A stretch of 64,000 bases of DNA, from assembly GCA_965113315.1 (NCBI GenBank), contig OZ220365.1. One strand, given 5' to 3'. Below the pieces are notes generated by a model. The model searched no databases. It was given only the letters and a program-made list of their open reading frames with translations, and was not told the DNA's origin. Positions 3,140 through 60,400 of this stretch are shown here, piece by piece; position 1 is the first letter of the stretch; each line of letters starts with the position of its first letter. The stretch comes from Podarcis vaucheri (Eukaryota). Position numbers and translations under genes: made by a program.

Positions 3140-3389
3140 TTATATTCATCACCAGGTCTCCAGTGGAAGGATAGTGTAACCTTTCCGCAAAGTCCCGGCA
3201 ATACCACACAAGCAATTCCTGGCCAGGTGGTATGGGTTTGATAGTATAAAAGTAGACATCCATTCCATTCTGACAAGCAGCCAGGTTCTGCTCCTGAACA
3301 GAATGTGCTGGGTTTACATAACGCATCCAATTACTCTTTTCCTCATTAAATCCATCAATGAAGTGGAGAAGTTCACCACCAGAATATAT
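3140..3389 (-). CDS. PRDM1: PRDM1 exon 4 (C-terminal half of the PR/SET domain)
   Basis: ctgcag|ATA acceptor and A|gtaagt donor; 250 nt; encodes [74 protein letters not shown]..., including the PR-domain motifs NWMRYVNPA and ELLVWY. Confidence 0.98.
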
Positions 3390-13920: not shown

Positions 13921-16622
13921 GATTTAGGAGTAGTTGCAACACAGATCATATGTCCAACAATTTATCCAATTTCACTTGAATTATTTAGCTGTGATCAAAC
14001 AGCCGAATATACCTTACAATGAATGTTCCTATATAGATAAACAAAGCCTCAAAAAATAAGAACTGAAGTCAATCACTTTAAAATGATACCACTACATAAT
14101 CTCCAAGTATTTGACAAGCCTTCATGGAAAGGTTAGTAAAAAAATACAATCCAAGCACATGCATGTGCACATACACAACACAGGTGTATCTCGGAACATT
14201 ACTCTAACTACAGATGTTAATGACAGCATTAATATTTCATAAGCATGTTTTTCTCCATTAAATCAGCTCACTACTTACATAATTACATGAGGTGATATTT
14301 GAGTAATCTCTCAAAAATATTATGACAGAGAATGATTATTTGTGCAAATTGAGCCTACCAAAATCTACCAAAAGCTTTGTTTAGCCCGTATAAAAGATGC
14401 TGTTCTCCAACCATTTCTTTGTAAATGAGGAGTAAGTATTAGATTTATTGAGTTATATTGGCATTATTCTTGAAAGCAGAGCAGGTATCTCTTATTTTGT
14501 TTTCCATTAATGAATCAGCTGAAATCCAGACCAGAAAACAGATTATTGGATTTTGATCTGGGGCTAGCCACAAGATTGGGCAACTCACCATCTCTTGATC
14601 TTAGCCCCCCCACCCCACCCTGCCGATCAAATGACAATTATGAGAATGTGAAAAGGAACACGGTAAAGGCCCCAAACATAGTTAAATCTGTGGCAGGACA
14701 TAATGAAGAAAGTTACAGATATCTCAATTCTAAAGGGAGTGTGAGGGGCATGGAATCAAGGAAGAATAAGTATTTCCTTCTGCTAACTTTTCACTTGACA
14801 AAGGAGACTATAATGAAATCAAATGAGGATACTGGCTATCCAGATTCCTTAGAAGAATCCAGATAAGTAGTTAATTATGAGAAACAACCACAAACATTTC
14901 AAGAACTTAAAGTACTGTTCAAAACAGCCTTGGCAGTAGTTCCAGACCTGTGTGTAGTAAGACAGATGTAACCCAGTATTCTCAGAGTTCAGTGTATATA
15001 AAAGAGTAAACGGGAGCTGGACTTCCTATTCCCTACAGCAAACCACCAGAGCCCAAAAAGCTCTACTGAGGATTAGGAGCCTCTGCTGAATGGATTACAG
15101 GGGAAGGGGGACCCCCCCCAATCATGCCATGGTACCTTCCATAAGTGGAACTCCCACAGGTGGAAGGTGCTTCTGCCTCATTTTGGGGGACCCCCCTTCT
15201 CCCACAGTCCATCCCACTCAGCAGAGGCTCAGACCTCTTGGTGAAGCATGTTTGGGGGCAGGGGGTGGGTTGCAACGGCAAGCAGGAATGTCAGCTAGCT
15301 CTGTGCTTAACTCTGGATCCAATCCATTATTTACACATATTCATGTTTGCCAATACAAAGCCAGCAATTTTAAAAAAGTTTTTTCAGCCAGCTTGTGATG
15401 TGGCAAAGAAGATCAAACCAAGCAAGCGAGGCCACCCTAGCACAGAAAAATGATGTTAGCTGCTTCCTACATATTAGCTGATGTTCAGGCTGATCAATTA
15501 AGTGCCATTTGTCAACAGTTTCACAGTATCCCCACCTAAGTCATGTGCATGGTATATACTAGGTACATTTTAAAGCTTCTAATTCTGTTTCTCATAGCTA
15601 ATCATTTAATTGGGCTATATGGGAGTGTGAAATAATGCAAGTCCATAGAGATAACTAGCCTATTACAAGTTTCCTGGTCATTCCCCAAAACTGTGACATC
15701 CGGATCCAGTTTATATCAGTTGAAGTTCTGGTCCCCTTTCTACATGCAAGCCTTTCCATGTTGTTTGTTGTAGGAGGATACATTTAATAACTAGAAAGGA
15801 ATGAATTTACACCCTCCCTTAGCTCCGTGGTCAGTTTATTTAGCCACAGTAGCAGCACAGGTTATAGCTGTTCCACCACAAGTTGCAGGACAGGGACAAA
15901 AATGATGGGCCGTCCCTACCATTATTAACTAGCTGAACTTCACGCCTAGCTATAATAGCTACTCTATATGAAGGAATAAACAGGCAACCAATTGCTCATC
16001 CGGGATAATTTTTTCCAGCCCTTCTGAAACAACAACAAAGAATGTACCCACTCCAGAGACATGGACTGAAATATACCTGTGCGTCCAGCTACAAATAAAG
16101 GTGCACTGCCCTAGATAAACAAGTCACATAAATACAGGCTACTTATTTAATGACCTGGCCTTAACATCATCCTTTCTTCTTGGAACCCTATAAAGAACTG
16201 ATACAATAAGCCTATTAAAAAAACACACCTTTGTCTAATAATTCAAGGAAAAGCAACCCATTTCAATGCAACCATAGTATTTCACTACCTGATCCAGGAG
16301 TAGAGAATATTGTTCTCTCCTACAGATAGGTATGCTTAGAACCCGAATCTACAATACAATCTTTAGAAATTTCCATTCCTAAATTAAGTAACATTCTTGT
16401 CTATTTAGCAACACAGACATAAGTCGATTTATGCCAGTTTGGAGATGTTTGTGCTTTCCTGTGCAGAAGGTATTTTCTCCAGGTGCATTTCTAGGGGTGA
16501 ACCTTGGAAAGCCGTGGCACCCAAACATTAGAGAGTGTAGAAATCAAGAAGACAAACCCACTTCCAAGAACAATGTGATCTGGCTACCAGGTTTGAATCA
16601 TCCTTTGCAAACATGTTCTTAC

Positions 16623-16805
16623 CTCTTTGCCATGTCCTGCATATTTGAAAATCAAGTTCCTTGGCAAGGAAGACTCAGCCTGGGTTACATTGCAGCCTTC
16701 TGTGCTGGGCTCCGTGGGGTGATCATTTACAATGTAGGTACACTTGTCTTCAAATTCAGCCTCTGTCCATAGAGTCATGTCAGCATCCTTCATGTCCATT
16801 TTCAT
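16623..16805 (-). CDS. PRDM1: PRDM1 exon 2, coding part from the MKMDM start
   Basis: ATG at 16805 (A at -3); 61 codons [30 protein letters not shown]...[19 protein letters not shown]; GAG|gtaaga donor. Two in-frame TGAs lie just upstream, so this is the first usable ATG of the main frame. The whole exon is 16623-16872 (ttttccag|GCTGCC acceptor). Confidence 0.96.
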
Positions 16806-16841
16806 TATCAACTCTGGTCCTTTTCTTCACTGCTCTGGGAT

Positions 16842-29678: not shown

Positions 29679-29808
29679 CTTATATCTATACTGTTGACTG
29701 CTTCATAAGACAGAATGATTATATACAGAAATAAAATAAATTAATAAAATCTGTAGGCTAAGTCCAACTAACTTAACTCAGAGCAGTTCCTCAGTAATGC
29801 GTCTATAC

Positions 29809-30055
29809 CATGGGTAGGCAAACTAAGGCCCGGGGGCCGGAGCCGGCCCAATAGCCTTCTAAATCCGGCTCGTGGATGGTCTGGGAATCAGCCTGTTTTT
29901 ACATGAGTAGAATGTGTCCCTTTTATTTAAAATGCATCTCTGGGTTATTTGTGGGCATAGGAATTTGTTCATTCCCCCCCAAAAATAGTCCGGCCCCCCA
30001 CAAGGTCTGAGGGACAGTGAACTGGCCCCCTGCTGACAAAATTTGCTGACCCCTG
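29809..30055 (+). mobile_element. hAT (Charlie/Buster-like) MITE
   Basis: CATGGGTAGGCAAAC / TTTGCTGACCCCTG ends; perfect 8-bp TSD GTCTATAC with central TA; close homologue at 57200-57451. Confidence 0.9.
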
Positions 30056-32269
30056 GTCTATACCAACACCACACAGACACAATATCCTCCAACCCCTCCA
30101 ACCTAATTAAAATAAAATAAATTATTAAAAATAAATATTATAATTTTATGGCAAACATTTTATAGTGTGCAATTGTATATTCGTGCATGCTGAATATTCC
30201 AAAATAATGTTGTTATGAATACAAATATTTTTTTCAAAATTCCCTACATGAAAAGTACAGTGCACCATAATATTCTTACTTGCACCTTCCCACAACCCAG
30301 GCAATTGGTAGCAAGTAAGTCTGGAGCTAGAATTAGTTGCATAGAACAGCCACTAACCTGAAGACTTCCCTTCCACAGTCCACTTCAGTCATTCAAGTAG
30401 GCTACATTATTCAATGGGGTTATAGCCTTTGATGATACAAAAGCTTCTTTAAACCAAAAATTTAAAAAAGACTGGAAATGTGTGGGAAGTCTTTAAAACC
30501 GACACTATCATGTAAACCACACAGTTGCCTGGGTTTCGTAACAAAGGATTACATTGGCTGATTTTGTGGTGCCTGAAAGGGCATGCCTGCTCCTCAGCTG
30601 AGCCAAGCTTACAAAAGTTTCCCAAGTTCTGAAGGTAAAGCCTTGAGGAAGAAAACTCTTTCCTCATATATTTTATTTGCTGTATTAACCATGCACTGGA
30701 TTGTTTCTGGGCTTCTGCACTTACATCATAGCATACAGAAGTGCACACCAGGTGTTTTGGACGACAGCACCTCAGAGATCTCTATCATGCACAACATTTT
30801 CCCTACATGGATCTAGATTATGGCAGAGGAGGAAAGCAGATACATCACATGTTTGCTCCTCCTCTGCACATATGTATATAAGGACGCCATCACTTATAAA
30901 AGGGTTAGGATATTTCAAGGAGAAGTTGCAATGCCTGGCCACTGGCATATAAGCTGAGAAAGATGCCTCACTACTCTGTCTCTTGCCTTGATCACCCCAC
31001 CAGGAAAAATGACAAGCTGAATAGTATTATTTATCAGCACAAAAAAATTCAGAGTTTTTTTGTTGCCAGATTAGGAAAAAATCTGACATTAGCACCCCAT
31101 TCCTAATCTTTCAACAGTGGTAGAATAAACTAGGAACAGGAACAGAATCCCCCCCCCTTCCCGGCCAATCAAAAACTGTTTTTGAAATTTGCTTATAAAG
31201 CAAAAGTTGTGGGAGGGTGGAAAAAGCAGCTGCTTCTGAGAAGGAGCAATTAAAAACTCTGCAGTAGCCATACAGAAATGCTTGCAGATTTTGGCTGATA
31301 TCTTGTGCTGTTACACTAGGAGTAAATGAAGCATGTAAGTGTTCAATCTGCAAACAATGGAATGTTGAATCAAGGCAAGACATACACTGTGGAGCTGGCA
31401 GTAAGTTCAAAAAGACTGGACTGACCATGCTGATGTAATGCATGACAGAGAGGTTAAGGGCCAGCAGAAATACTCTGGCCTACATGTTAAGCTGCCAGGA
31501 AATGTAGGGCTGCCATACGTCCGGATTTTCCAGGACATGAGATTTCAAAGGCGGAATTGTTGTCTGGGGGCAGTTTCTGAAATGCAGCGCTAGGAAATGA
31601 TACAACAGCAGTGGCTTCATAAGCACTAAGGCTTGTACTACTGAAACAGGAATGTTAAGACTTATTTTGCCACAGAAAACTCACTCTTCGTTGGCACGAT
31701 GCAAGCAAACCACATAACTGATATATTAATTTCATTAATTGAAAGTCACTAAATGCATGATGCACATCAATTTAGAAATTATTCGTTGAAAGAGAAATAC
31801 AAAAAACCCACTCTTTTAGGTTTATTGTTAAACAGAACAACAATTATTGTGTGATTTTTTAAAAAACTTCTATTATTTGCTAGTTTCAGGAAATGGTCGA
31901 TGGACGTGGGTTATCCAGAAGGATTCGACAGCATTTAGGAGAAGCTGACCACGCTTTCAATTACATTATTTTCGTCAATTAGTCTTAAGGAAAATAACAC
32001 TTCTATTAATCATTTCAATTAACGGCAAGCACCGCATGACACCAGCACCACAGCCCATATGCTGCGCTCCAATCACCCAAATATTAAAGCCTTTTTAATT
32101 GATTTATCTAAAGAACATTCAATAGACTCAAGGTGGCAGCCAGCCAGGAAATCCCGAAAGAAGATGACAAAAAGGTGGGGGTGCTAAACCCGTTTCCCAA
32201 TTTGTTTTTCCTCTTTCTCCAGGGTTCACTGTTAATCCAATCACAGCCCATAAAGCTCGCCTTTTAATA

Positions 32270-32301
32270 AAATAAATAAATAAATAAATAAATAAATAAA
32301 T
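32270..32301. repeat. (AAAT)n microsatellite
   Basis: Seen directly. Confidence 0.9.
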
Positions 32302-35300
32302 AGATAAAGGGGCACACATGTTGGTTTGTCATCTGCTTGGAGAAGCCCCCCTTCTCCCACACTTAGCTGTCCAGTTAAGAGAGGGCTGCTGCGTACAGCA
32401 GCACATTTTTATCCAGCAGAAATATTTAGCTTGGCTACCCGCCAAGGAATGCTGGAAGAATAGAATGAATTAGGGGATTTACCTTCCACGTGCTTCGCAC
32501 GCGTCACTGAAGAGCTTGCTTCTTTTCTTTCTCTCCACCCCCCCCACCCCTCCCCGCCCCTCTCTTTCCTTTATCAAATATCTCCTACAGTTAAAAAAGT
32601 ACAGCCTGAAATAGGAGCCGACACGTTACCAAGTTTGGTCACAGTGGCGCTATTCTGTGCAAGGTAGACATTTCCCTTTACTGTTGAAATAAAACCTTTG
32701 CACCTAGAAAAGCTTAGCTTGTCTTGTACACTACTTCATGTGAGAGGTTTCTTTTTCTTAAGGGACCGTTCGCTTTATGCAAAGATTCTTTTCACAGAAG
32801 AGCTAGTGATTTGAAAACGTATTCCCACTAGACATTAATATACTAAACTTAGCTTTGTTGATATAAACAAGGCGGGTTGTTCTGTCCTGTGACTGCAGGG
32901 TGTTTATATGGGCTTTCCTTTGTTTTTCTTATGACATTTCCTAGCTTCTTGACTGGCCTGGTTTTATTTGTATTGGCAAGTAAGACGGAAAGAGTTAATA
33001 TATAAAAAAAGGCAGTTCGGGAAGCACCCTATATCGCCACTGACTGAGCTCTTAATGTGAGAAGCTAGGATGATGTTTTAATAGTTCAACAGATGGTGCT
33101 ACTATACATATTGTACAGAGATAAAGGAAGGCTTCACCAGCATTAAATAGGAGAGCTTCTAACCAGCTACAATTCAATACTGTGCATGCATGCATGTCTT
33201 TCCTGAGTTTATACCTCCAGGATGCTTTTTAAGTTAAATGAAGAGGTATGCTTCTTTCAGTTAAGTGTATTAAGTGTACATAGCACAGTCAATGAGCAAG
33301 CTATTTTAGTGGAATTGGTGGCGTTCTGTAATAATATATATATATATATAATTTCAAGATACCACTCAGCACATTAAGCTCATCTGCACTGCAGTCATTA
33401 AAGTGCTGGGGGTAAATGGGGAAGGATGGCAAAATGCAGGACTCAGATAGGCATGCATGATTCACTGTTCTCCCCTTCCTTCTCGAAATACTATCCTTTT
33501 GATCAGCAGTGAATGGTGGGGAGAGGAAATTCTTGAAAATGTCGGCGGTTTCACAGTCTTCTGATTGCATCTCTGTATCAGGACCAGCATTATCTGCCAT
33601 CTTACTCAACTATGCAATAGGTCAAATAAAAAAAGCTAAACACATTTTCTCAATGATTACCATTTCCTAGGAAATACTGCAATTTTGGTGCACAAAGGAG
33701 CCATATTGTGGGTGTTTCTCATATAACCTAGGTCAGCCTTCCCCAGCCAGATGCTTTGGACTCCCAACTCCAATGAACTCCAGCAAGTAGGGCTTTTGCT
33801 GGCTAGGGCTGATGGAAATTGTCATCTAAAGGATCTAGGAGGGCACCAAGTTGGGGAAGGCTAGCCTGGACCCTTCCAGTGTTAACCGAATGTCACAGGA
33901 AGGGCACAAACTGTTGCATTTCTCACACTATTTTGATTATGCTAAAATGAAATTTGCTTTGGATTGATTAAAACTGCACTTTATATTTCCAATAAATCTT
34001 GCTTATATTCTGCGTGCACAAAAATACTAATGGAGGGGTGCGGAACCCCAGTTACCAGGGCAAAATGCAGCATTCAGGCTACACCCGCTCCCCATCTGTA
34101 GCTTCTCCCCAACAATCCTGCTTTTCTTCTGTCTTGAGAATTTATGCTTGACTCACATGTGTCCTTGAACTCTGATACTGTTTCTTCCTTGCCTATTCAG
34201 ACATGCGAGTGTGTGTAAAAACAATCCTACTGTGCAAACGTAGAACTAACATTCATGGCCCTACACACCACTAACATGAGGCTCCTAGAAGGTTGCCTAG
34301 AAGGAAATGTGGCCCTCAGACTATAATATGTTCCCTGTCCTTGTGCTAATGGCAGATACTAGACATGCAAGACACTATACCATTTATCACCTGTTGCCTT
34401 ATCTGGCATTATGCACTATAGGCAGGGACAGTAATCCTGCAGGTTTTAATTTCAGACATGGAATATTTCAGTTCTGCTGGTATAGACAATTACTCTGAAC
34501 CCATTTTCTGTCCAATTCTGACTTTCTGTTGGGGTGAAATCATCAATGATTGGATGTGTGAAATCTAGCTACGGGATTGAAAATTGTTGCCCATTTATTG
34601 TTGATTCAGCTCGTACTTGTGACTTGCCACAATACAATCAAATTTGTGGTGATATAATTATTTTTATATTTACAGTCTGATAGACAAAACTGATAATTTT
34701 CTCCAACCCCAAAGGCAGTTCTTTCAGGTAAAAATAAAATAAAATACAATTCTGCCAACACACACATTTGGAATGATACTTCAGTGAGATTAAATAATTA
34801 CTGAATCTCTGTATTGTGTTTTATGTTTAATATCTTTGCAATTAATTGATCCCCACCCCCCAATGACTCTGAAAATTCAGGGCTGCACTCAACCTTCTGC
34901 AGCACCAGCATCTGTTGCAGATAATCCATCAATGGTTTTGAAATTGCCAAATGAAAATGCAAAAAGCCCAAACTGTTAACATTCTACTATTCAGACTGGT
35001 GTTTTTCTTTTCTTTTTAAATGCAGTTGGAAAACTGAATTAGTGCAATATGTCATTAAATTTTAAGACAAGGCGCCACCACTGAGGATGTCTTCTCTTGT
35101 AAACAAATAAGCAAATAGGCTTTAACCAGGCCCTGACCCAATAAATATCTATGTGATATATAGCCTTACAAATACAGCATAGTGGACCTTTGCCCACATA
35201 GTATTATGTTCTTGATACTAACCTTGTGCCCAAATCAATCAATGTTTTTAACTGGCAAATTTCCATCTGTTTTGCATCTGAAATGATTACAAATCAGAGT

Positions 35301-36318
35301 GTTTAGGGTTGTACTGGCATTCAAATAATTCCCCAGTAGGGTTTATTTAATCTAGAGTTGAGATAAATATGTGGCGCAAGGCAAGCTCTACCAAATTTGT
35401 TATATTTAAATACAGTGTTTGAAATATGTATACAGGCTTATTTCTTTTAGCAGCAAACAAAATTTGCAAGTCTTAAAGAAAACACAAACATGTCTTTTTC
35501 TGAAGCACCAGATTTATCAGTGATTGGATGTTTGAACCCTTGCAGGTGAGTTTTAATAATATGAGTTTTAAAAACATGCAAGTTGTTGAATCACAATGCA
35601 GTAAATTGTCCTTCCACAAACCTTCCTTCTTCATTAAAATCTTATTTGCTTGGTAATCTCCTTTGATCGCTAAAGTTATAAGAATCCCCCTCTTTTGCTT
35701 TTGATACTATCAGTGTAGCTTTTGACCAGAGAGCGTGATGAATTAAATGTATGACAGATATGACAGGTGAGGAGTGCTTGGAGGGGGCTTAAACAGCAGG
35801 GATAAGACAAAGCCCCCATTTAAGAACAAAACCTCCACCCGATGACTAGCCCATTAATGACCAATCACAGAATCACTCTATTTGCCCTGTTGGACAAGGA
35901 GCAAGCCGATACTACAGACAAAGCTTTGTTAGCCACAGGGCAGTTGTTCAATCAGGCCACACAGCCAACTAATTGAAAAGTCCGTTCCCTGTTCCTGCTC
36001 CCTTGGTATTTGATACGCTGGACTTTTATAGGTAAAACTGCTCTCTTCCTATAATGTTATATCAAGTAATTCACCACAAATTTACAGCTGGACTAAGTGG
36101 TATTACAGTTTATAAACCTGAAAATCTATCTGCAGGGAATCCAGATAAGCCTCAGAGAGAAACAAGTCCCGCATTACAAATCCAAGGAATTTTGGAAGTC
36201 AATCCATTAGGATTATTGGGGGGCAGGCCTTTGATTTTGGAAGTCAAAACTACAAAAATAATAAAATCTTACAATCTCTCTTTATTATAACCTCTTTTTG
36301 AAGGCTGATTGTTTCATC

Positions 36319-36321
<3 letters not shown>

Positions 36322-36354
<33 letters not shown>
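36322..36354. repeat. (AC)n microsatellite
   Basis: Seen directly. Confidence 0.95.
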
Positions 36355-36359
<5 letters not shown>

Positions 36360-37464
36360 CATTTCAATAATATTTGGAAGAGATTATTGGGCAGGAGGCC
36401 CAACAAAAATATTTGTTTTCCTGAGGTTTGTAATCACATGCTCTTTAAAGAACCAATTTTAATAACTATTAGTACTCAATATAAAAATCAGATCACAAAT
36501 ATTTAGCAAACGAGCGTATTATTCATCACTCTGGGATCATCTGAAAAATCTCACTGCTCCCCTTTAAGTATTCAATATGTATCAGAGATATACAGCATCA
36601 TAAATAAACTGAACATTCAATACCCCAAGAGGATTAAACCAGAAAATGTGCTACAGAAATTTGAAAAGGCCGAGAGCACATGGGGAAAGAAGCCTCTGTT
36701 GGTATTGCATTTATACTATTTGTCTGTTAATAGGACGAAGTTTTCAATTGTAATTCTTTTCAGAAGTGTTAAATACTACAATTATATTTTCAATAAAGCC
36801 AAATGCGAGAAGAAAAAATAGATATTAAAGTGGGCACTGTTGAAAATATAAAGTTTTATCTTAATTTCAGGTTTATAAATGAGGATAAGAACAATACCTG
36901 TTCATCATTAGGTTCAGCTATAAAATGATGGCGGTGATAATAATCCATATTTACTTATATATAATCCTGGCTTTGGTAAAGCCACACACTTTTCATTTTC
37001 ACTATGAGAAAAAAGAGTGGATAGAAAAAATACTTTTTCACTCAGAAAAAGTGGCGACAAGGAAATGCAAATCTGAGCACAGCAGTTATCTTTTTAGGTA
37101 ACAATTCCTTCTCATAAAAATGCGACAATTATGCTGTCAAGTCAGTTATAAAGGCTGATTAAAGCATTTCCAATTTGAAATGTGTAATGTGATATAAAAT
37201 AATGGTAGCAGACTGAAAGGTAGAAGGCATGATTTTAAAAAGTTCTATATTTTTCAATGCAGATTTATTCGCAGCTTATGAGCAATACATGTAAATTGTC
37301 GTTGATACTGAAAGCCAAAGATATATATACAAGGTCCCCCCTATCTTTTAAAGAGGCTTGCTGGGTTGCAGTTGTTTCCCCATACATGTTGCTTCAGCCG
37401 CAAACATAAAAGTTAACATTTAAAGAAACCATTCTAGGATAATACCCTTTCACATGCAGCTAGG

Positions 37465-37612
37465 CAGTGCTTTTTTCTGGGGGGATGCAGGGGTACACAT
37501 ACCCCTAAACATTTTGTGAATCTAAGTTTGGCCTCATTGAGGGGCAGTATTTCAATAGGAGTAGGAAAATGAGAGTAACCCTAAACATTTTTTTTAATAG
37601 AAAAAAGCACTG
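37465..37612. mobile_element. hAT-type MITE
   Basis: TIRs CAGTGCTTTTTTCT / AGAAAAAAGCACTG; perfect 8-bp TSD CAGCTAGG; inverted homologue at 56091-56236. Confidence 0.9.
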
Positions 37613-38154
37613 CAGCTAGGAATTATGCTCTCAGTATTACAGATGTAAAGGCAATTTCCTAATTCAATCCACTTGTCTCTTGTGATCTCTGCATCTCTAG
37701 TTTAGATTTCTAGTCAGAAATGTGAAGTAGTGTCGTATCCAAAATGCAGGCTCAAAGTCCTCGCTGCTCCACCTCCAAAAGCTGTCAATAGGTCTGGACT
37801 ATGTCTGTCCACAGCTTTGCATTCATAGAGACCATTTGACAGAAGGGCAAGGAAGACATCCAGGAAAACTGCTTTCAGACCTTATCTGAGCAACAATACT
37901 TAACTTTCACCACCTGGGCATGGCTTCCGGAGAGAAAACAATCACACGTATTGTCTCCTTCTGGACATTAACCCCTAAACCAGCCTCCAGTTGATGCCAA
38001 ATGTTTCTTGGTTTTTTAAAAAACCCTTATTTTTAGTCAGGACAGTATCTCTAGTCTTTCATCTCCCCACCCCTGCCCTCAGTAACACAAACCAGTCTGT
38101 AATTGGTATTATGCAATATTAGAAAGGTGGGCCTCATAGTTATTAATTGAAATC

Positions 38155-38393
38155 CCATGAAAATGGACAGGATGAGATGTAGCGCCTGCTCTGAAGTACC
38201 CCTCAAGCTCGCTACCTCTGCCAGACTCGTGGCTATCTGGAAACCGGCCCTGGCACCACTGCCCTCATCCTCCATTTCCTCTGCCCGAACGCCCACCTGC
38301 CCAGACTTTCTCTGGTGGCCCCTTTCGATGCCTGGCATCAGCAGTGGCAGCAACGCCGGCAGCGCAGTAGCCCCCGTACCCAAGCCATGCCCC
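38155..38393 (-). pseudogene. Tailless retrocopy fragment of an LPCAT3 (MBOAT5)-like 5' leader plus first coding exon
   Basis: GC-rich 239-bp insert between perfect 14-bp direct repeats TATTAATTGAAATC (38141-38154, 38394-38407). From ATG 38275 it reads MEDEGSGARAGFQIATSLAEVASLRGTSEQALHLILSIFMG, similar to the recalled human LPCAT3 N-terminus ...SGFQELSLNKLATSLGASEQALRLIISIFLG. Confidence 0.8.
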
Positions 38394-39793
38394 TATTAAT
38401 TGAAATCAAGTTATTGTGCCTAAATTCAAGGTACTGTGGAAAATTAAGGGACTTTTTTAAAAAAATCCACTTGACAGACCACACAGAAAATATCATATCT
38501 TATAATCTCTTTCTAGCAAGAACAATTCTATATTTGTTTCTAGCAAAAGGAGGGAGGGCAAGCAATTTTTGCAAATGCCCTCCTTTCTCCTGTAGCTGTC
38601 ATGGATGGGCTGGATGTGGGGGAGGGGCACCAGCTGGGCAACCCCCAAGGAAACCCCAAGTTGAAGGTGTCTCAAAGCCAGGAGATTTGTGTTGAGGTGA
38701 TAATGAGTGGTCAGAGGGAGAAGAGGGGACAGACTGGGAGGAGGAGGTGTCAGAAGCAGGAAGAGGCTGGGGCAGAGAGCAGTCTATATTCAAACCATTT
38801 GTATTCTGTATATATCTACACTAGTATTTTAATTCAATCTGAGATTAACTGAATGGATGTATATATTATGGAAACGTGTGATCTGCTTCGTAGTAAGTAT
38901 GTTTAGAGTGCTGGCGTGAAATATAGATATGTTTCTGTGTTTTGAAATTTTTGGTATATGAGGCAGAGCTTGCTCACTAAACCCCAGTTTGTTCTTTCTC
39001 TCTCAAAGACAATTATTTTCCTCCAATGATGACATTTTTCCTTTTTTGTAAACCATGAACAGAATAATTTTATCCATTTTATTCTATTACAACCTGCAGA
39101 AAACTAAATTTTAACTGAGCTTCCTTCATTGCTAAAGTGTACCAATTATCTCTCCCACCTGGAAGTTGAAGACATGTCCTCCTTTACCTGATAAGGGCAT
39201 TTTGGCTTTAACCAACCCAACTAATTTTACAAAAATAACATGATATGTAAAATAGGTTTGTTCCCTAGAGCTTTCTGCTTCCCTCCTATCCAAGATATTG
39301 AGTTCAATTTACAATGACCTCTGATTGACCTATAGACAAAGTTTTAAAGGTCTTTGCCTCAGCTACCATCAGGAAGTGGCCCTCTGGAAATGCCTTTTGA
39401 AAAACACACACCACAAAGAGTAGTAACAGCTGAAGTGACCCAGGAGTCAATTCTTGATCCCTGTACAGGAGAATCCCCTTCACCCTTTTGGCGTTTCATC
39501 CATCTTCATTTGCTTTTACTTTTTGTCATTTCCTCTTGACTTGCAAAATGAAAGACAGAGGAATCTATGATTCTTCTTCTACCTCTTAACTTTTACAGCA
39601 AATAGCTACTTCCCCCAGTGGTACACAGAGTGCATTTTGCTGTATTCTATTATTCTGTCAGTGTCCCTGTTTTGAAGATTCATGGGGCTGGAATAGGTCT
39701 CATAGGTAATTTAGTCCAACCACCTATTCAGTGCAGGAAATTCATAGGTACATCATCCTCAACAGACAGCTGTCCATCCATGGGGTGATTTAC

Positions 39794-39900
39794 AGGGTTG
39801 TGGGTTCAAGCCCCATGTTCGACAAAAGATTCCTACCATTGCAGAGGGTTGGACTAGATAACGCTTGTGGCCCCTTCCAACTCTACAATTCTGTGATTCT
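39794..39900 (+). mobile_element. SINE/LINE remnant with a CR1-type 3' tail
   Basis: gggttcaagcccc (B-box-like) ... gggttggactagat...cccttccaactctacaattctgtgattct, a CR1-type 3' terminus. Confidence 0.65.
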
Positions 39901-39916
39901 ACTTCCAACACAAATA

Positions 39917-40261
39917 CAGTGGTGCCCCGCAAGATGAATGCCTCGCAAGACGAAAAACTCGCTAGACGAAAGGGTTTTGCGGTTTTTGAGCTGCTTCGCA
40001 AGATGAATTTCCCTATGGGCTTGCTTCGCAAGACGAAAACATCTTGCAAGTTTGTTTCCTTTTTCTTAACACCGTTAATACAGTTGCGACTTGACTTCGA
40101 GGAGCAACTCATAGAATGCGGTGTGGTAGCCTTTTTTGAGGTTTTTGGTGATTTTTGAAGCTTTTCCAAAACTTTTCCAACACCGTGCTTCGCAAGACGA
40201 AAAATTCGCTAGACGAAAAAACTTGCGGAATGAATTCATTTCATCTTGCGAGGCACCACTG
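39917..40261. mobile_element. Tc1/mariner (Tigger-like) MITE
   Basis: TA|CAGTGGTGCCCCGCAAGATGAA...TTCATCTTGCGAGGCACCACTG|TA, with repeated internal CGCAAGACGAAAA motifs. Confidence 0.9.
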
Positions 40262-42972
40262 TAGCAATTGTCAGGCAGGTTCAACTGTAATTAATGTATT
40301 GCCAAGTTCACATAAAGCAAGCAGGATCTGTATTTTTAAAAATAAACTAGATTTGCATGAAGGTAGCCGTTGCAATGCTAGTGAAATGTGAATGTTGGCA
40401 GCCAGGCTTAGGTTGTATTGTGCTGAGGACAAATTTGGGGGCTGGCCTTGATTCCTCAGGAGTGGTCTGGAGTTACTGATGGGGCTCAATTGTCAAAATA
40501 ATCATGCAACATTGTAGCTTTTGCAAGTCAAAGCAGTGAAGTGTAGGTGAACAGGTTTATAGTATGTGATATTATTAATAAGTATACATCAGCCATGTAT
40601 AACATTTGGAGCACACCATATAACAACACTGAGTTCTCTTTTAAAAAATTGTTTTAAATACTCATATATGCATACACACACATATACACAGAGACTCTGC
40701 AAAGTTAGGGAAGGTTGGGTCATTGATGAGTATCTTGAATTTTGTGTGTGTGTGTGTGAAATAGAGATCCTAAAAGCAATCTCATTGGATCTGGAATACC
40801 TGGAGACCCCTGGACATAATGAAGTCTTTCAGCAACAGCAGTTTAGTGGTGTAACCACTTCAAGGAAATTTAAATGGGGGTGTTAGCTCTGTTTCATTTT
40901 CTGAGCCAGGTAGACTAACTCACAATACGAGTGGGAGGACTCCATGGTTTTCCTCCTTCTCTGAGGATCAACAACAGATTGGCCTGCATAGGAAGTCAGG
41001 ATATTTAGGGGGCCTTTGTTAATACCACTGTTGCAGATGTTTAATTATGTTTTGGCCTAGCTCAGTCCATAACTTCTCTCATGTCTTCCTTCTGGGGTGG
41101 GTGCCTATAGCAATTGATGTCTTATTATACATCTTTGACTAAGTAGTGAAAATTATAGAGGGCTTCTCAAAAGCAAACCCTGCATAATTATAAAGTAAAT
41201 AAACTGCATATTCTTAGTATCAAGATAATCTCTAAGCAATTTCTCACACTCCTAAATGCATTCCTCTTATGTAAAACAGATGTATGTCTTTGGGGTAGGC
41301 TTTGTGTTTCATTCATGTACTGTGAAAGTTCCTTGTAATTAAAGGAGGAAATACAAATTTCCTTGTCTAGTTCTAAGGATAATTTCTTGAGATGTGGATG
41401 CTTGCGGGAGCAGGGTGAGAGAACACATGGGAAACTGAGGAACGTCTGTCTCTCTCTCCCCCTACCCTCTGCCCGAAAAGGAAAAACTGGAAAATGTTTG
41501 AAATTTTTTTACAAAGAAAACCCAAACTCTTAATATTTTTATTCTCTTTCCAAATGATGAGTGAAAACATTTTATTTCAACTATTATGATAACTCCAAGT
41601 GTATTTATTTTCTTGGCCTGATTCTCTATGGCTGAACAGACCAGACAAACATGGTCTACAGTATTCAGTTTTGACACATCCAATGCGAATGTAAAAGGCG
41701 AAACATTTCAGACTTCTGCATGGTTACTCAAATTCAGTGTCTCCTGAATAGGCAAGAAGAAACCAATTTCCACACCTGTCAAAAATAGATTAATATCCTT
41801 GCTAATTGCACTTTAGGAATGGTCAATTAGTTCTAGTTAAACAGCTTTTGAAGAAGGGAGGGAGAAAGCAGGCTGGTATTGCCACCAGCACACATTGTTA
41901 TATTGAATAGACCTGTGCGAGAAGCGACGTGTGCCTCTGACATTTCATTGGAGCTCCTGCTGTACAACACAGCAATAATGCCATTCTTCTAGTTACGAGT
42001 CCATTTTAACGATGATTAGGACAGGAATGGTTACAAATCTTATATAAAGGAAAAACACAGTGGCACAGTGTGAGTTTTAAACTACCCTTCAGATGTCACA
42101 TCTGTGTCAAGAAAGACAGAAAGAAAAACGACAAGCTTTTCTAAAAAGTAAAAGGAAAGGTTTTTTTGCAGCAACATATATCTTATAATATTTATGTATT
42201 TCCCACTGAGGGGGAAAGCTAGCAATTCTTCTGAATTTGAAAAACAGGATTATATGAAATCCTGACCTTGACTACTGACAACTTAAGTATCCATACTACC
42301 TGCGGAAAATCTAAAAAATAGAAGTCAGGGCCAAGGGTTATTCTCATGATAAGTTAGTAAACATAGCAGGAAGGTTAGTTAATAAACACCAACTAAACCC
42401 TTCAATTACAGCAATAAATTGTTCAAATTGGTTAAATGTCCACAGTTTTTGCCCCAAACCCTATGGTGAGCTGTTTAATCAGCAAACCATTGCATCACTC
42501 AACAAACAGATATTGGCAGTCTCTGGGAGACACAAAGCAGCCCCTTAAGAATTAGTCCTTGATTGGCCAGCACACTTAGTTTCCTCAAAACTTGAAACTG
42601 AAAAAAGCTTTTAACTAAAAATAAATGTGAATAACAAATTCCTTCTAACAATATAACATTTTTCTGCAGAAGCCACATGTGTTTTATATTCTGACATAAT
42701 CTTTTTCACGTGGGCTGCCTCATGTATATTCTGTTATGGAAAATCCTGCCTCTGGGATCAGTTCAGTAAGAGAGCTATACTGACCTTGGACACCTATATG
42801 TAAAAAAACAGGCTATATATTTTGTAATAATAAAGAAGATAAAGAAAGAAGGGCAAATCTTTATTATTCCTTCTATTACTTTCATTTTCAATTTACATGG
42901 CTTCAGAGAGGCTTATGCTAACACCAGCATGTTCAGGGTCTTTGAATGCTGCACATTATAATGGTAGCTGAT

Positions 42973-43444
42973 GGCCTAGTCTGCACTTAACACTAAACCA
43001 TGGTTAATGTTAACCACAGCTAAAGCTGACCATGAACCATAGCGAAAGCTAAGGTGTCTAGCGGATGATCACTTAAACCTTAGTTAATTATGTCACAGAA
43101 TACAGTAGTTAAGAGCATCAGTGAAAGCAGCCAAGTCCAGAGGGAAGTTGGATTTGATTTTTTAAAATTTTCATTTTTTGCCACTTTTCATTTGCAGCTC
43201 TGTAGCTTTTGGGTGATGGTGTCTCTTTAAACATTGCTATGGAGGTCCTGGTTCACTAGTAATACTAAGCTATGGTTAGTGTTAACTAAGATTTATAAAC
43301 CAACTGCAAATGTTGGTTAATGAATGACCTTTAATCATAGTAACCATAAGTAATCTGCTAGGCTGGGTTCACACATAAATCCAAGTCATAATGTTAAGCT
43401 ATGGTTTAATGAACCATGGTTTAGCATTATGTGCTAACCAGGCC
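42973..43444. mobile_element. Old palindromic MITE, PIF/Harbinger-like
   Basis: Imperfect ~33-bp TIRs GGCCTAGTCTGCACTTAACACTAAACCATGGTT / AACCATGGTTTAGCATTATGTGCTAACCAGGCC, with internal AACCATGGTT-like repeats. The superfamily assignment is tentative. Confidence 0.6.
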
Positions 43445-45070
43445 AATGTGTCTGTTGAAACTCTCTTTCTATTCCGTTTTAGGTACTGCAACGAAGCCCC
43501 TGTCCTGTCATGAATCTAACAACTTGGCAGCATGGCCCCTGGCCTTCTATTCTGCAGACTCTTTAAACATGCACTTCATAACCTTTGTACTCCAGACAGT
43601 CTTTGGCATTAATACTCTAGCTATGAGAGTTTGAGATTTCATGTGTACTTTCCCCCCAGGCAAAGCATTGTAAATATTTGGAAGTATACTGAAACTGATA
43701 AAATTGTCATAAAAGTGTTAGAAAAGTAACTTTTCACCCCAAATGATTTTCATGGATAGTCTAAACTTTGTTCTTTGCAATCAAAAGCAAATGATGGAGA
43801 CAAAAAGTTAAAAAAAATCCTACTGGGTATGCTTAAAAGAGATATTTGGATCCTGCCTTAAGTGATTTTGACATTTATTATTATTATTATTATCTACTCT
43901 TAAATTTGTTGATTACTGCAACACACTAATCATTTTAGATAGTAGGATCATTAATTATATTTTTATCTTTTATTTCAATTGCTTGATGCTGCTTACCATG
44001 CTTTGTAAGCCCATTTTGAATATGAAAGTATTATAGAAAGGTAGAGTGTAACTTAAATGAAGAAATAAGAATTAACAATCCTATCATTTAAAACAATAGA
44101 GTAGTAGCATCAGGTTGAACCCCCTTTACAAGCTGTTGACCACTAAATATTAAAAGCCTGTTTTCAAAGTATATCTACCCAATGAGTACATGAAAACACA
44201 TCTGAATATGGGAAGATGTCACTCCCCAAGGAGTACATACCTAAATTTTGGGTGCTACCACTTCAAAGGTCTTATCTCTCACCCATTTGTTGAATCTTTG
44301 GTGAGGACAGTACAGGGTTAGGGATAAAAGTTGGGCTGGTATTTGGTGAGAAAGCAGTTCCCAAAGTATCTTGCTCCTAGATGTTAAGGCCTTTGGAGGT
44401 TAAACACCACGCTTCAAATTGGGCTCTGATACAAACAGACAACCAATTCAGTTACTACAAGTTGGGCACTTTATGTTCCAGTTGATAGGCTTCTAGTCAA
44501 CACTCTGGCAGCTGTTCCACAGCTCCCTGTCATCTACAGTGGTCTGATTCACATATCACATGAAAAGCAGAGTTTTAAACAAACTGGCTTGATGTGAAAA
44601 TGCAGCATGCTGGTGCATGCTCTTGGAAAGTTCCCATGGTATTCCTTGCCTGCTTCCTCTGCTGCTGTTGTGTTGTGTAGTTTGAACCTGGGCTCATGGT
44701 TTGTTTCCACCAAAAGAACCCATGATAGCAACCAAGGTTTATTTTCAGGAAACAAAGTACAAGCCTGCTTTCAGACAACACAACAACACAAGCACTGGCT
44801 TTTCTTCATCCCCAGCATGGCAGCAGCAGGAGGAAACCCCTGGGAACATTTGAGCTGCATGCTGCAACACACTGCTCATTCACATCTTATAAAGTCTCAG
44901 ATTTATACCAGCAGTGAAAAAGTTATAAATGGTTCCAGACTAAACTACTGCTTCATGAAAACAGTGAAGGGAGGCCACGTTCTCTCAAACTGTTCTTTTG
45001 CTCTGTCATCTTTCTTCCTAATCATACCACCTCTGTAAGCTCAGTAAGCAAGTAAGGCACCGTGGAAATA

Positions 45071-45259
45071 CAGTCATACCTCGGGTTGCTAATTTTTGGG
45101 TTACGGACGCGCAGAACCCAGAAGTACTGGAATGCATTACTTCTGGGTTTCGGCGCTCACACATTCGCAGAACCACCAAATTGCATCACGCACATGCGTA
45201 GACGCGGGTTGCGAACGTGCCTCCCGCACGGATCACATTCGCAACCTGAGGGTCCACTG
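45071..45259. mobile_element. Tc1/mariner-type MITE
   Basis: TA|CAGTCATACCTCGGGTTGC...GCAACCTGAGGGTCCACTG|TA. Confidence 0.8.
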
Positions 45260-46189
45260 TATACCATATTTTATTAAACCCCTCCTGCCTGCTTGGTTCG
45301 AATTATTTGAATATGCAATTTGGTTAGTACTGGCTTCATTCAGTCAGCAGATTTTCCACTAAATTACAATGTTTCAAATCATTATATTAACATTCCCCCC
45401 TCAAAACGTCTGATTTTCCCACATGTCCACTATACATGTATCTAATCCACTTTGCTTCCCCCACATTTCCAGCAAATATTAGATTATCTTTTGCTAGACA
45501 AAGAGGAGTCAAGTACCAGCAGTGCAGCATCTTTAAAAACAACAACCATATACTCACACAGCTCATTTTAAACTACGGTTTAATGTGAAGTGCAAACTGG
45601 GCCAGTGACTGTCTGTGCGAAGTATGTACTTGACTAGCATTCTCTTCGTTTTCCTCCTTGAAGTGTGAAAGCAAAAGTATGTCAGCTATCCTAAGCAGCT
45701 TCTCACTGCACCAGCACCTGCTCGGGCAACAGTCAGTTAAACAAGCAAAACAACAGCTGGGTAAGTCAGGTCAGTTACCCTATGAACCTCAAGACATATA
45801 CAATGGGCACCTCACCAGGCCACCCTTCCTTCTTCATTTGAAAATAGCAAGTCTTAGTAATATGATGCCTCCTGTATGCGTTTGAAGAGGCAGCAAAAGA
45901 CTTTCCGATACGCTGCTGCTGTTTTCTCTCTTTCTCAAAAGATGACAGATATACACACAGCCTCTCAGCCTGCATTGAGCACAGGGGAAAACACTGCTCA
46001 TCTAATTCCACACTGGCAATGTTTGCTTTAGAAGCACAGGCTCAAGCAGCTAGCATTAATCGTTAACTAAGCTTCATGGTGGTTAAATTTCTCTTGCCAT
46101 ACATACTCGTTAACATGTTTTCCAACTCCTGCGCAGTTTTACTGCAGCCTGTCATCAGGGTTACCCATTCTCTATTCAGGAGCACAATG

Positions 46190-46508: not shown

Positions 46509-46871
46509 GGGACATGGGTGGCACTGTTGTCTAAACCACTGAGCCTCTTGGGCTTGAATTCCCGTGATGGTTTGAGCTCCCGTTGCTCGGTCCCAGCTCC
46601 TGCCAACCTAGCAGTTCGAAAACACGCCAAAAAGTGCAAGTAGATAAATAGGTACTGCTGCGGCGGGAAGGTAAACGGCGTTTCCGTGCACTGCTCTAGT
46701 TTCGGTGTTCCATTGCACCAGAAGCGGCTTAGTCATGCTTGCCACATGACCTGGAAAAACTGTCTGCAGACAAACGCCGGCTCCCTCGGCCTGTAAAGCA
46801 AGATGAGCGCTGCAACCCCAGAGTTGTCTGCATCTGGACTTAACTGTCAGGGGTCCTTTACCTTTATCTTT
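46509..46871 (+). mobile_element. Sauria SINE, older subfamily with B-box deletion
   Basis: GGGACATGGGTGGCACTG head, CCAACCTAGCAGTTCGAAA core, CCTTTA tail; 14-bp TSD TATGT(A/C)TGAACATA with one mismatch. Confidence 0.9.
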
Positions 46872-47441: not shown

Positions 47442-47805
47442 GACGCGGGTGGCGCTGTGGGTAAAAGCCTCAGCGCCTAGGGCTTGCCGATCGAAAGGTC
47501 GGCGGTTCGAATCCCCGCGGCGGGGTGCACTCCCGCTGCTCGGTCCCAGCGCCTGCCAACCTAGCAGTTCGAAAGCACCCCCGGGTGCAAGTAGATAAAT
47601 AGGTACCGCTTACCAGCGGGAAGGTAAACGGCGTTCCGTGTGCTGCGCTGGCTCGCCAGATGCAGCTTTGTCACGCTGGCCACGTGACCCGGAAGTGTCT
47701 CCGGACAGCGCTGGCCCCCGGCCTCTTGAGTGAGATGGGCGCACAAACCCCAGAGTCTGTCAAGACTGGCCCGTTCGGGCAGGGGTACCTTTACCTTTAC
47801 CTTTA
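47442..47805 (+). mobile_element. Sauria SINE, young subfamily
   Basis: A box TGGCGCTGTGG, B box GGTTCGAATCC, (ACCTTT)n tail; CpG-rich; nearly identical to 54034-54392. Confidence 0.93.
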
Positions 47806-54011: not shown

Positions 54012-54392
54012 GGGACGCGGGTGGGACCCCCGTGGGACGCGGGTGGCGCTGTGGGCTAAAGCCTCAACGCCTAGGGCTTGCCGATCGAAAGGTCGGCGGT
54101 TCGAATCCCCGCGGCGGGGTGCGCTCCCGCTGCTCGGTCCCAGCGCCTGCCCACCTAGCAGTTCGAAAGCACCCCCGGGTGCAAGTAGATAAATAGGTAC
54201 CGCTTACCAGCGGGAAGGTAAACGGCGTTCCGTGTGCGGCTCTGGCTCGCCAGAGCAGCAATGTCACGCTGGCCACGTGACCCGGAAGTGTCCCCGGACA
54301 GCGCTGGCCCCCGGCCAATAAATGTGAGATGGGCGCACAAACCCCACAGTCTGTCAAGACTGGCCCGTTCGGGCAGGGGTACCTTTACCTTT
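54012..54392 (+). mobile_element. Sauria SINE, young subfamily with a reiterated 5' end
   Basis: Intact A and B boxes, ACCTTT tail, perfect 14-bp TSD TAAGGGTTAAAGGT (53998-54011, 54393-54406). Confidence 0.95.
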
Positions 54393-57199: not shown

Positions 57200-57451
57200 C
57201 AGGGGTAGGCAACCTTAGGCCCGGGGGCCAGATGCGGCCCAATCGCCTTCTCAATCCCGCCCATGGACGGTCTGGGAATCAGTGTGGTTTTTACATGAGT
57301 AGAATGTGTCCTTTTATTTAAAATGCATCTCTGGGTTATTTGTGGGGCATAGGAATTCGCTCATTATTTTTTTTCAAAATATAGTCCGGCCCCCCACATG
57401 GTCTGAGGGACGGTGGACCGGCCCATGGCTGGAAAAGGTTGCTGACCCCTG
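57200..57451 (+). mobile_element. hAT (Charlie/Buster-like) MITE
   Basis: CAGGGGTAGGCAACCT / AGGTTGCTGACCCCTG TIRs; degenerate TSD CTTTAGCT/GTCTAGCT; same family as 29809-30055. Confidence 0.88.
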
Positions 57452-60400
57452 GTCTAGCTCCTGAATTAAAAACCTGTATTAAGAAAGCAACCATACCCAA
57501 TACGTTGCTATTTAGCTAATGTAGGACACGTCAAACCCTATGCACTTCTTAACAGATTCTTGCACTCTTCAATGGATACCGTTAAAAGGTGTTGTTGTGT
57601 GGCTCTTTAAAGGAGACAGAACTACAAAGTAGGCCTAGTGGAAGGGTGGTTGTGTGTGCATGTAGTGAATAACCCACAAATTCGATGCAGTAACCATAAA
57701 TCATTCCAGATTTTTAATGAATTATTTGCCTTTATAATTCTCCTCCCCCTCCCCTTCCTTCACTTAACATACGGTACAACGAAACAAAAGAGAGAACATC
57801 TTTGTTATGACAGAATGTTCCACTTGAAGCAAAACTAAACCCAATACCCAGTACTATGGGCTGTGTCTGAAGTTACGTTCAGTGCAGATCGTAAGCATCC
57901 GAAGGAACGAAAAGAAATGGGCAACCTAAAGAGGAGATTGCATCTAATGCTGTAAATATTACATTCTGGAAAATAAGCTACATCTGAATTAACTGCTCAT
58001 AGCATTGTGCTTGCTGTTGTTTGTCAACAGCATGGTTCATATACATATAGTATTGTGACTTCTTTTTAACTTAGCCAGCAATTCATGATAGGACAGGCCT
58101 TGTCCTGTTTTTAAATGGGCCATATTTCCCCTCTAGTCAAGTAACTGATAAACCAACATAAACAAGATAAACATTTTAATGTTTTATAAGTCATTGAATT
58201 ATCAGGCTACCTGAGTGAACAACTTAATTTTAAAGGTGACTAACCCAACTTTTATTCTCAGCTGACTATTCCTTACTGTAATAAAGATGGTCCTACAATA
58301 AAGAATTAATAAATATAGAACTTACTACGTGCTTTAAAGAGGAAAAATCTCTGGATCCTCACAAACCTTTCAACCTCCCATTCCCCCTCCCTGCCCAATT
58401 TGCATGGAGGAGTTTATTTTACAGCTTTATCCATGTAATGGTCTCACAGGCCTCCCCTTCATGCCAAAATACCTCTTTGAAGTTTGCCCTCCCATTAGTG
58501 CTTCAGTGTAGGTATTCAGACTGATCACACAAGCACAGCAAAACTCCAGAACTGTCCGTGTTCTGTCGGATACAGTTGTTTCATGTTGCCTGTGATTTAC
58601 AATCTTAATTATTGCTCAAAAGAAGAAGAGCACATATTTGTTGGAGCTGCCCCCCCCTTTACCGTCGTCTCTCTCTCTCTCTCTTTTAACAAAACAGTGC
58701 TCTCAGGGTTTGTTGGACATTGTGCAGGATGTCTTTTACCATGCCGAATGGAACACACTTAATACTTCTCCTTTATAACCTTTGTAATAAATCAACTGTC
58801 ACTCCATTTGCACAAGTGCAGCCATTAGTGTCCTGTGCCCTCCTCCCCAGCACTTCCCGAATTTTAAACAAAGTAGGAATAAACTGAAGCTGAACAGAGC
58901 CAGCGAGTCCAGTAAATCAGTTTAATGAGAACAGAAACAGTTGTAAGAAGTCCACTGCTGAACGTGGGCACGGGAGACTCGTCTTTAGAATAAGATTTGG
59001 ACTTTGGAAAACTGTGGGAGTCATATTGAGGAATAATTTATTGTTCAGTCGTGACGTCTGCTGCGAACATTGTGTTCTTTGAAATTACTTTTACTGCAGT
59101 TCTGAGATGTATCTTGTTTAGATTCTTCGGTTTGGTCCCATTATAGCTTCGTGCTTTCATCTTTTCCCACAGATGTGGTGAATTGTTTGCTTATCCACTC
59201 ATTTCTGAGCTCTTACTTAATTTCCTTGTTTTGCATTTGTTACAGGTGAATCACAAGGGCACTTATATCTGTTTTAGATACAAATGCTTAAGAACAACAA
59301 ATTGTCATCTTTTTCAATGGGACAACAAACTAAAGTACTGTGTGCTACTGGTCTGAGCGCATCTTTGAAGTGTCTCCTGAGATGCTGTTTTTATTATTTG
59401 TCCCTAGCAATCCATGTGAAGGTAACCACATGTGTAACAATAGGAAATCTATAAACTAACCGCCATTCCCAAAGCAACCCATGATAGTCTTTGCTTTCCC
59501 TTTGCATATTGCAGTTTTCTAGGCCAATTGCATGATTCACAGGCCAAAGGCCCCATAGGCTCTTCACAGAATTCTGTGTAATACTATTAAAAAAAAGCAA
59601 TTAAGAATAATGTATTCCAACTCTAATCATATTTACTCTGAAATAAGTTACACTGCTTCCAAATCGAGATGGGTCTATCATTACACTGGAATGAAGGCCA
59701 CCATAGTAGATTGATTGATTGGTTTGTTTGTAAAAGGACCAATTTTCAGTTCTGAGTTTAAAAGACCTTAGGTGGCAAGATATCTGCCTCATATTTTAGA
59801 CAGCTGCTGCCAGATGAACTGACTGGTTTTGTTTTAATGTTGGAGATATAACCCTTTTGTAGGAAAATAAGAATCCATCTTGCTTTTCACTGTATAAAGG
59901 CATATTTATTGTTTTATCTCATCGTAAACCACTTTGAGGGTCGTTGTTTTTACAATCAAGCGGTGATATGAATGAAATTAAAAATAAAAATGAATGAAAT
60001 AAAAAAATAAATATTGCCTAGGACTGCAGAATGGCACCCACTAGGGAGCTTAGAAGTGCTGGGGGACTGTATTCCCTGTCTCTCAGGATGGACATCAGGT
60101 CAAGGAGGAATGTCTACCTGGTCCTATCCGTCAAGTCTTTCCCCCTCATTCTTTTTACAGTATGTCCATTAGATTGTGAGCCTATATGCAGAGACTGTCT
60201 TGTCTTTTAATTTATGCACAGCATGCAAAAAGGCAGAGCTTTATAAGCATTAAAAAAAAAGAAAGACTGCAGTTCTATATGTAGTGGTGTACAACAATAA
60301 AACACCATTAAGAACAATGCTGCAGCAGCAGTGCCTGTGTGCATGGCACTTTGAAAGGTCCCTATCCAAACCACATTTCTATCTAAAAACCAGATACAAG

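Follow-up and report, generated by a model that had tools for sequence, protein, structure and literature searches.

We describe a 239-bp insert in a 64,000-nucleotide stretch of the genome of the lacertid Podarcis vaucheri (assembly GCA_965113315.1, contig OZ220365.1; hereafter the window), which bears the start of an LPCAT3 coding sequence, is bounded by a perfect 14-bp target-site duplication and lacks any tail. With a probability of roughly three in four, we read it as a tailless retrocopy of LPCAT3 exon 1 made by an enzyme of the long interspersed element (LINE) type. For the fuller account, in which this old, fixed and now dead copy also arose by internal priming on spliced mRNA, we consider the odds to be even.

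A GC-rich insert between perfect direct repeats

The insert occupies positions 38155–38393 and is arranged as follows, left to right on the + strand:

38141–38154: target-site duplication next to the 3′ end of the insert as read in LPCAT3 sense, reading TATTAATTGAAATC on the + strand, 14/14 identical to 38394–38407
38155–38275, minus strand: LPCAT3 coding part, with an ATG at 38275 followed through to 40 codons plus one G (MEDEG...SIFM-G), from translation and the match to chicken LPCAT3
38276–38393, minus strand: GC-rich leader of 118 nt, presumably the LPCAT3 5′ untranslated region, as read from the sequence
38394–38407: target-site duplication next to the 5′ end of the insert as read in LPCAT3 sense, 14/14 identical to 38141–38154

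By direct comparison, the two copies of TATTAATTGAAATC agree at all 14 positions and neither side can be extended. The window holds nine exact direct repeats of at least 14 nt at spacings of 100–1000 nt, where 30 first-order Markov simulations averaged 0.47 and never exceeded 2, and several of the nine sit in or beside short interspersed elements (SINEs). The insert stands out from its surroundings in composition (61.5% GC versus 39% in the 2-kb flanks) and contains 11 CpG dinucleotides, at an observed/expected ratio of 0.52. Its last letters in LPCAT3 sense, ...TTCATGG, adjoin the duplication directly, with no terminal oligo(A) or poly(A); Tandem Repeats Finder returned no rows over 37000–39500, and direct reading found no A-run at either junction. 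All of these measurements agree with the sequence-only reading, a model's earlier annotation of this DNA, which had described a tailless GC-rich insert of this length with a perfect 14-bp duplication.

Minus-strand translation likewise matches what that reading had said of the leader, the start codon and the extent of the coding part. Past the 40 codons and the G, the frame crosses the duplicated target and runs for 33 further codons to a stop, for a total of 74 codons, and it is also free of stops across the whole leader. Within the leader there is an in-frame ATG 21 codons upstream (near 38338, minus strand), and a 16-codon upstream open reading frame (ORF) in another frame starts at 38388. 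The open leader frame and the upstream ORF are probably what GC-rich sequence without stops would provide. The leader also has a repeat-like texture, with GCTGCC and GCTG motifs. A known non-coding RNA was considered as its source and rejected: a search of 30000–46000 against Rfam at E 1 or better gave two weak matches, neither of them in the insert.

The insert resembles the 5′ end of LPCAT3

When the 74-residue frame was compared with the PDB, chicken LPCAT3 (7f3x) was the best of four hits (E 4.2e-4). The 41-residue peptide alone matched the same chain weakly (E 0.066), and among its four hits a designed repeat protein scored equally well. A scan of 1.84 billion representative proteins returned two at E 0.001 or better. 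One, P0002, is a 45-residue ORF on a 1,075-nt Logan contig and itself matches 7f3x at E 1.8e-6, with residues 13–44 aligned to 34–65. The other, P0001 (628 residues), was set aside as a low-complexity match, being an internally repeated unit that covers query residues 6–33 only. Word-indexed protein searches produced only P0002 and P0003, the latter a second 45-residue exon-1 ORF of the same kind. The window peptide is 59–67% identical to P0002 and 54% identical to P0003, and the alignment of the three has 20 invariant columns, including the initiating methionine and the final Met-Gly. Pfam yielded no family for the peptide and the Atlas no usable hit, as would be expected because a short N-terminal piece lies outside the MBOAT domain.

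The 7f3x match of the longer frame, together with the match of P0002 to the same structure, bears out the earlier assignment of the peptide to the LPCAT3 N-terminus, and the sequence comparisons support the view that the insert was copied from the 5′ end of LPCAT3 (MBOAT5). The copied part amounts to 40 codons plus one nucleotide, against 501 residues in the solved chain of the chicken protein, so the copy is truncated at its 3′ end.

A decaying copy shared among relatives

Part of the searched stretch around the insert is present in 20 of the 24 sequencing runs listed, which represent at least seven organisms. We aligned contigs of four of these runs, from organisms A, C, F and G, on 37655–38893 at a likeness of at least 80%. 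One contig of organism A covers 37655–38735 with no differences, so that organism A is probably where the window comes from. A second, 883 nt long, aligns only to 38154–38285, with 22 differences over 132 positions (83% identity), and carries flanks unlike the window on both sides (213 nt and 538 nt). Contigs with this second copy were also found in organisms C (38154–38247), F (38154–38254) and G (38162–38254), all three bearing the letters of the organism A copy at the listed differing positions; in the runs X4 and X8, too, the gene contig continues on either side into DNA unlike the window. Because it is conserved across species in this way, we take the second copy to be the real LPCAT3 gene.

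Letters were listed for ten of the 22 differences between gene and insert in organism A. At nine of the ten, a G or C in the gene stands opposite an A or T in the insert; six fall in a CpG of the gene, and six are synonymous third positions. At codons 24–25 the insert encodes Leu-Arg, while the gene encodes Ser-Leu and agrees with the SLG of P0002 and chicken. Since the gene holds CpG or GC where the insert holds TpG or AT, and since the SLG motif is broken in the insert, these letters mark the insert as an old, decaying pseudogene and the gene as its conserved partner. The expectation that a search of the same genome would recover the LPCAT3 exon was thus borne out in part: a second, LPCAT3-like copy is present, but the alignment is confined to 38154–38285, and for the leader (38286–38393) no match of at least 80% was found in the organism A contigs, the gene contig included, other than its own locus. 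Over 38327–38410, likewise, the contigs of the locus itself were the only ones to align at this level.

An origin from a repeat family or a local duplication was rejected, because the organism A contigs align only one other piece, the gene, and only to 38154–38285. Seven direct and one inverted repeat families were found in the window, and none touches the insert.

At least two relatives carry the insert as well. In organism C, a contig (37947–38540) crosses both junctions, with 3 gap letters besides 17 differences; in organism G, one contig (38162–38737) spans the right junction, and a second reaches 22 nt into the left side, short of the 31 nt needed for spanning. Three deletions, of 9, 1 and 17 nt, have shortened the leader of the organism G copy (38309–38382); its coding part has none. 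Organism F showed the gene only, with no insert flanks, and organism B, outside the aligned runs, contains a 0.97 share of the sampled words of the stretch. The sequence-only reading had proposed looking in relatives for an empty site with a single 14-mer; no contig in any of the four runs skips the insert.

A rate taken from Table 2 of PMC13295347 (9.7% for 61 million years) would convert the 17% divergence between gene and insert into an age of up to ~100 million years. Because much of the change is CpG decay, an age of tens of millions of years is the fairer figure.

Could the insert have been kept for a role of its own, whether through its 74-codon ORF or as CpG-rich regulatory DNA upstream of PRDM1? 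The frame is open over 74 codons and the whole leader, the insert lies in PRDM1 orientation, and it has been retained in at least three species. Against this, three of the nine affected codons listed are amino-acid-changing and the conserved SLG motif is broken, the CpG content has decayed (observed/expected 0.52), and the organism G leader has lost 27 nt to deletions. The 33 stop-free codons in the flank are an event of ~9%, as estimated from base composition, and no RNA run is among the runs listed as holding the stretch. We therefore consider retention for function exceedingly improbable; nothing suggests that the insert is anything other than a dead relic.

The 3′ end coincides with the putative exon-1 donor

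The point at which the LPCAT3 sequence breaks off was compared with related proteins. P0002 and P0003 both end ...LMGG-stop, whereas chicken LPCAT3 continues ...SILMGYPFALF. The insert ends ...ATGG, at the same point as the glycine in chicken ...LMGYPF. An MGG-stop ending combined with a GT donor would place the end of the exon after the first G of the glycine codon, G|GT GGN TRR; this is our reasoning rather than the output of a tool, and it assumes that P0002 and P0003 are genomic ORFs that run into the intron and are closed by a stop codon rather than by the edge of their contig. In all three species with a contig covering that end, the gene copy matches exactly one base, a G, past the insert, which is compatible with a G|GT donor and equally with a G|GN codon. 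The 3′ end of the insert thus probably corresponds to the exon-1 donor, in phase 1, judging from the ORFs of other species. The same comparison of LMGG-stop ORFs with chicken LMGYPF fits the earlier placement of a phase-1 first intron at this glycine.

Apart from the duplicated target, LPCAT3 similarity stops at Gly41, so that exon 1 alone is represented and no joined exons are seen. HMMER carries the LPCAT3 alignment ~15 residues past Gly41 into FQLITMRPTFLI, for ~5 more bits. We considered FQLITMRPTFLI as exon 2 and rejected it, since its first codons are the duplicated target itself. The extension arises because the target resembles the expected G-Y-P-F start of exon 2: it encodes G-F-Q-L-I where chicken LPCAT3 has G-Y-P-F-A.

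An end at a putative splice donor raises the possibility that the template was a capped, free exon 1, either a splicing intermediate or a discard from a stalled spliceosome, copied from its 3′-OH without base pairing. A free 5′ exon was one of the two templates offered in the sequence-only reading, the other being an internally primed mRNA. Non-long terminal repeat reverse transcriptases such as R2 and L1 start readily at RNA 3′ ends, which speaks for such a template. It would account for the exact end at the putative donor without appeal to chance, and the 118-nt leader is kept, so that the copy may be 5′-complete. Yet the intermediate is rare and held inside the spliceosome, and the likeness of the target to the start of exon 2 would then be a coincidence of 1–8%. 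The case is moreover a single one, with an exon boundary placed from other species, and among the titles and opening lines of abstracts in the literature we found no precedent that joins splicing intermediates with target-site duplications. On balance we think a free-exon template unlikely.

Proposed tailless retroposition with internal priming

Our preferred reading remains LINE-type retroposition without a tail. Staggered nicking and target-primed reverse transcription are suggested because a clean 14-bp duplication surrounds a piece that appears to derive from a transcript. In this scheme, a LINE endonuclease would have nicked AT-rich intergenic DNA at two points 14 bp apart, and the freed 3′ end (...GAAATC-3′, + strand) would have primed cDNA synthesis on LPCAT3 RNA. 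Synthesis would have proceeded to the 5′ end of the RNA, and fill-in would have produced the 14-bp duplication. Under internal priming, the primer would have paired loosely with the first exon 2 bases of the spliced mRNA, and the position of the 3′ end at the exon 1/2 junction would be a matter of chance.

The sequence of the target offers a way to weigh internal priming. When the sense-strand target GATTTCAATTAATA is set against the back-translated chicken G-Y-P-F, it is compatible at 8 of 10 positions and identical at 5 of the 7 fixed ones. An equal or better fit is found for only 0.7% and 1.3% of the window 14-mers, or for 2–8% when other lengths are compared. Against the intron start GTRAGT the target matches at 1 of 6 positions. 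This resemblance to the expected start of exon 2 would favour internal priming on spliced mRNA; it is suggestive, not strong.

Several points weigh against this account. Internal priming turns the exact end at the exon 1/2 junction into a coincidence of ~1 in 2000. The target match requires A, T and A at three third-codon letters obtained by back-translation; the gene has G or C at all six listed synonymous third positions, so the true match may be 5 of 10, and the statistic was chosen after the fact. The target reads TT/GATTTC, versus the TT/WAAAAWW reported for tailless copies. With a single exon there is no splice junction to prove RNA origin, and the leader is without a match to the gene. 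Finally, a perfect 14/14 duplication sits slightly uneasily with 17% divergence from the gene, an unease tempered by the AT-rich, CpG-free make-up of the duplication.

Relation to known kinds of insertion

The concept of the tailless retropseudogene reportedly goes back to Schmitz et al. 2004. The insert is like such copies in its putative RNA derivation, its presumably kept 5′ end, its cut 3′ end, its missing oligo(A) and its target-site duplication. It differs in its target, which in sense context is AACTT/GATTTCAATTAATA, with TT before the break but no WAAAA after it, and it has no A-rich priming site, ending instead at the probable exon-1 donor.

In the parts of Noll et al. 2015 (PMC5322556) on which we draw, tail-less, 3′-truncated copies flanked by target-site duplications are described for tRNAs, snRNAs, 7SK and mRNAs, and are ascribed to internal priming with pairing between the nicked target and the RNA. 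Their insertion sites are complementary to 2–18 nt of the source RNA at the truncation, and the TT/WAAAAWW consensus is given as a tendency of copies made by L1, not a strict requirement (PMC5322556). The green anole is the only non-mammal for which those parts report tailless copies. As to the suggestion that the insert might represent a little-described class in squamates, 3′-truncated, tail-less RNA copies with target-site duplications, mRNAs among them, had already been described, including in the green anole (PMC5322556).

With a classical processed pseudogene the insert would share its origin as a copy of a host mRNA, a duplication in the 7–20 bp range and the state of being dead on arrival. 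In processed pseudogenes, however, it is the 5′ end that is missing, with poly(A) and the 3′ end retained, the reverse of what is seen here, and the insert has no exon-exon junction.

The templated sequence insertions treated in the portions of PMC5110952 considered here are comparable in that a short piece from a distant transcribed region is inserted once, apparently at a random place. Those of class 1 have a poly(A) tract and a TTTT/A target, neither of which the insert has. Those of class 2 are described there as lacking a duplication, with a microdeletion, microhomology or added letters at the junctions, unlike the perfect 14 bp and clean junctions of the insert (PMC5110952).

These insertions bear on a further explanation, in which LPCAT3 cDNA or DNA served as filler at a staggered double-strand break, with fill-in of 14-nt overhangs and no LINE priming on site. 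The missing tail would fit, as would the absence of an L1- or Bov-B-type target motif on the sense strand, and RNA-templated patch insertions are documented in human in the portions just cited (PMC5110952). But class 2 patches as described there come without duplications and with a microdeletion or added letters, whereas the junctions here are clean and the perfect 14-bp duplication has the same length as those of two SINEs in the window. A DNA fragment would also have no reason to stop at an exon boundary. We judge repair of this kind quite unlikely.

Candidate enzymes

A LINE-type retrocopy leaves the question of which LINE was responsible, and SINEs in the window provide a comparison. Three Sauria-type elements, with tRNA-like heads and (ACCTTT)n tails, were found:

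46509–46871: Sauria-type SINE; duplication 46495–46508/46872–46885, matching at 13 of 14 positions, starts TA
~47442–47805: Sauria-type SINE, 5′-shortened; no duplication found
~54012–54392: Sauria-type SINE; duplication 53998–54011/54393–54406, matching at 14 of 14 positions, starts TA

The latter two are 95–99% alike over four blocks. Two SINEs in the window do therefore have 14-nt duplications, as the sequence-only reading had said, although one is perfect and the other matches at 13 of 14. It had named RTE/BovB as an example of the LINE enzyme involved.

The Sauria/Bov-B Tn-TA signature, as given in the sections of PMC13295347 used here, consists of a T-run about 10 nt upstream and a duplication whose first letter is T or A after T. 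Both SINE duplications start TA on the SINE strand, in line with this signature. The duplication of the insert shares the length of 14 nt, and it starts with TA on the + strand, which is antisense to LPCAT3; on the LPCAT3-sense strand its first letter is a G, preceded by TT. Neither strand has a T-run about 10 nt upstream, so that the Tn-TA signature is absent. Nor does the insert end in (ACCTTT)n or (CAA)n, the tails presumed to serve the enzyme (PMC13295347). Given the G start on the sense strand and the absent signature, involvement of RTE/BovB was not demonstrated; the enzyme may as well have come from an L1-type element or another LINE as from Bov-B.

Genomic surroundings

PRDM1 lies on the minus strand of the window, where its PR-domain exon (3135–3443) matches the PRDM1 entry in the PDB at E 2e-46. 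We take the N-terminal exon of PRDM1 to lie in the ORF at 16587–16826, partly from the known N-terminus of that protein. As first proposed, the insert lies upstream of PRDM1 and in the same orientation; we place it ~21 kb upstream of the start codon.

Repeats of several kinds are found around it. A very high-copy repeat at 38620–38790, 230 bp from the insert, has a summed contig depth of ~175,000 in organism A; in three other species the depth is 16,000–55,000, and loose ends fall consistently at 38702–38704 and 38757. Two stretches, 29809–30060 and 57200–57456, are copies of an interspersed element, 84–85% alike over blocks of 92 and 80 nt; the first may be flanked by a duplication, an exact 15-nt repeat at 29729/30110. 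An inverted pair of 155 nt (37450–37604/56097–56251), 86% complementary and 18.5 kb apart, presumably represents one interspersed repeat in two opposite copies. Within 39943–40203, TCGCAAGACGAAAAA and TGCTTCGCAAGACGAAAA form short exact repeats spaced 247 and 164 nt apart, which suggest a small tandem or segmental structure inside some element. A weak SCARNA7 match on the minus strand at 36298–36461 (25 bits versus a gathering score of 65, E 0.013) is most likely due to chance.

Implications

As a dead relic of 239 bp, the insert alone is of modest interest. Its value lies in being a clean, datable example from a lacertid in which the 5′ end of an mRNA was probably retroposed without a tail, with perfect junctions and at a target that is not of the L1 type. 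If the template was in fact a free exon, the insert would preserve a spliceosome intermediate as a fossil in the genome, and a class of 'first-exon retrocopies' would have its first member. One case cannot carry that claim. Should tailless copies prove to pile up at first-exon donors, however, it would mean that LINE enzymes reach RNA that is in, or just released from, spliceosomes, and that genomes record splicing intermediates.

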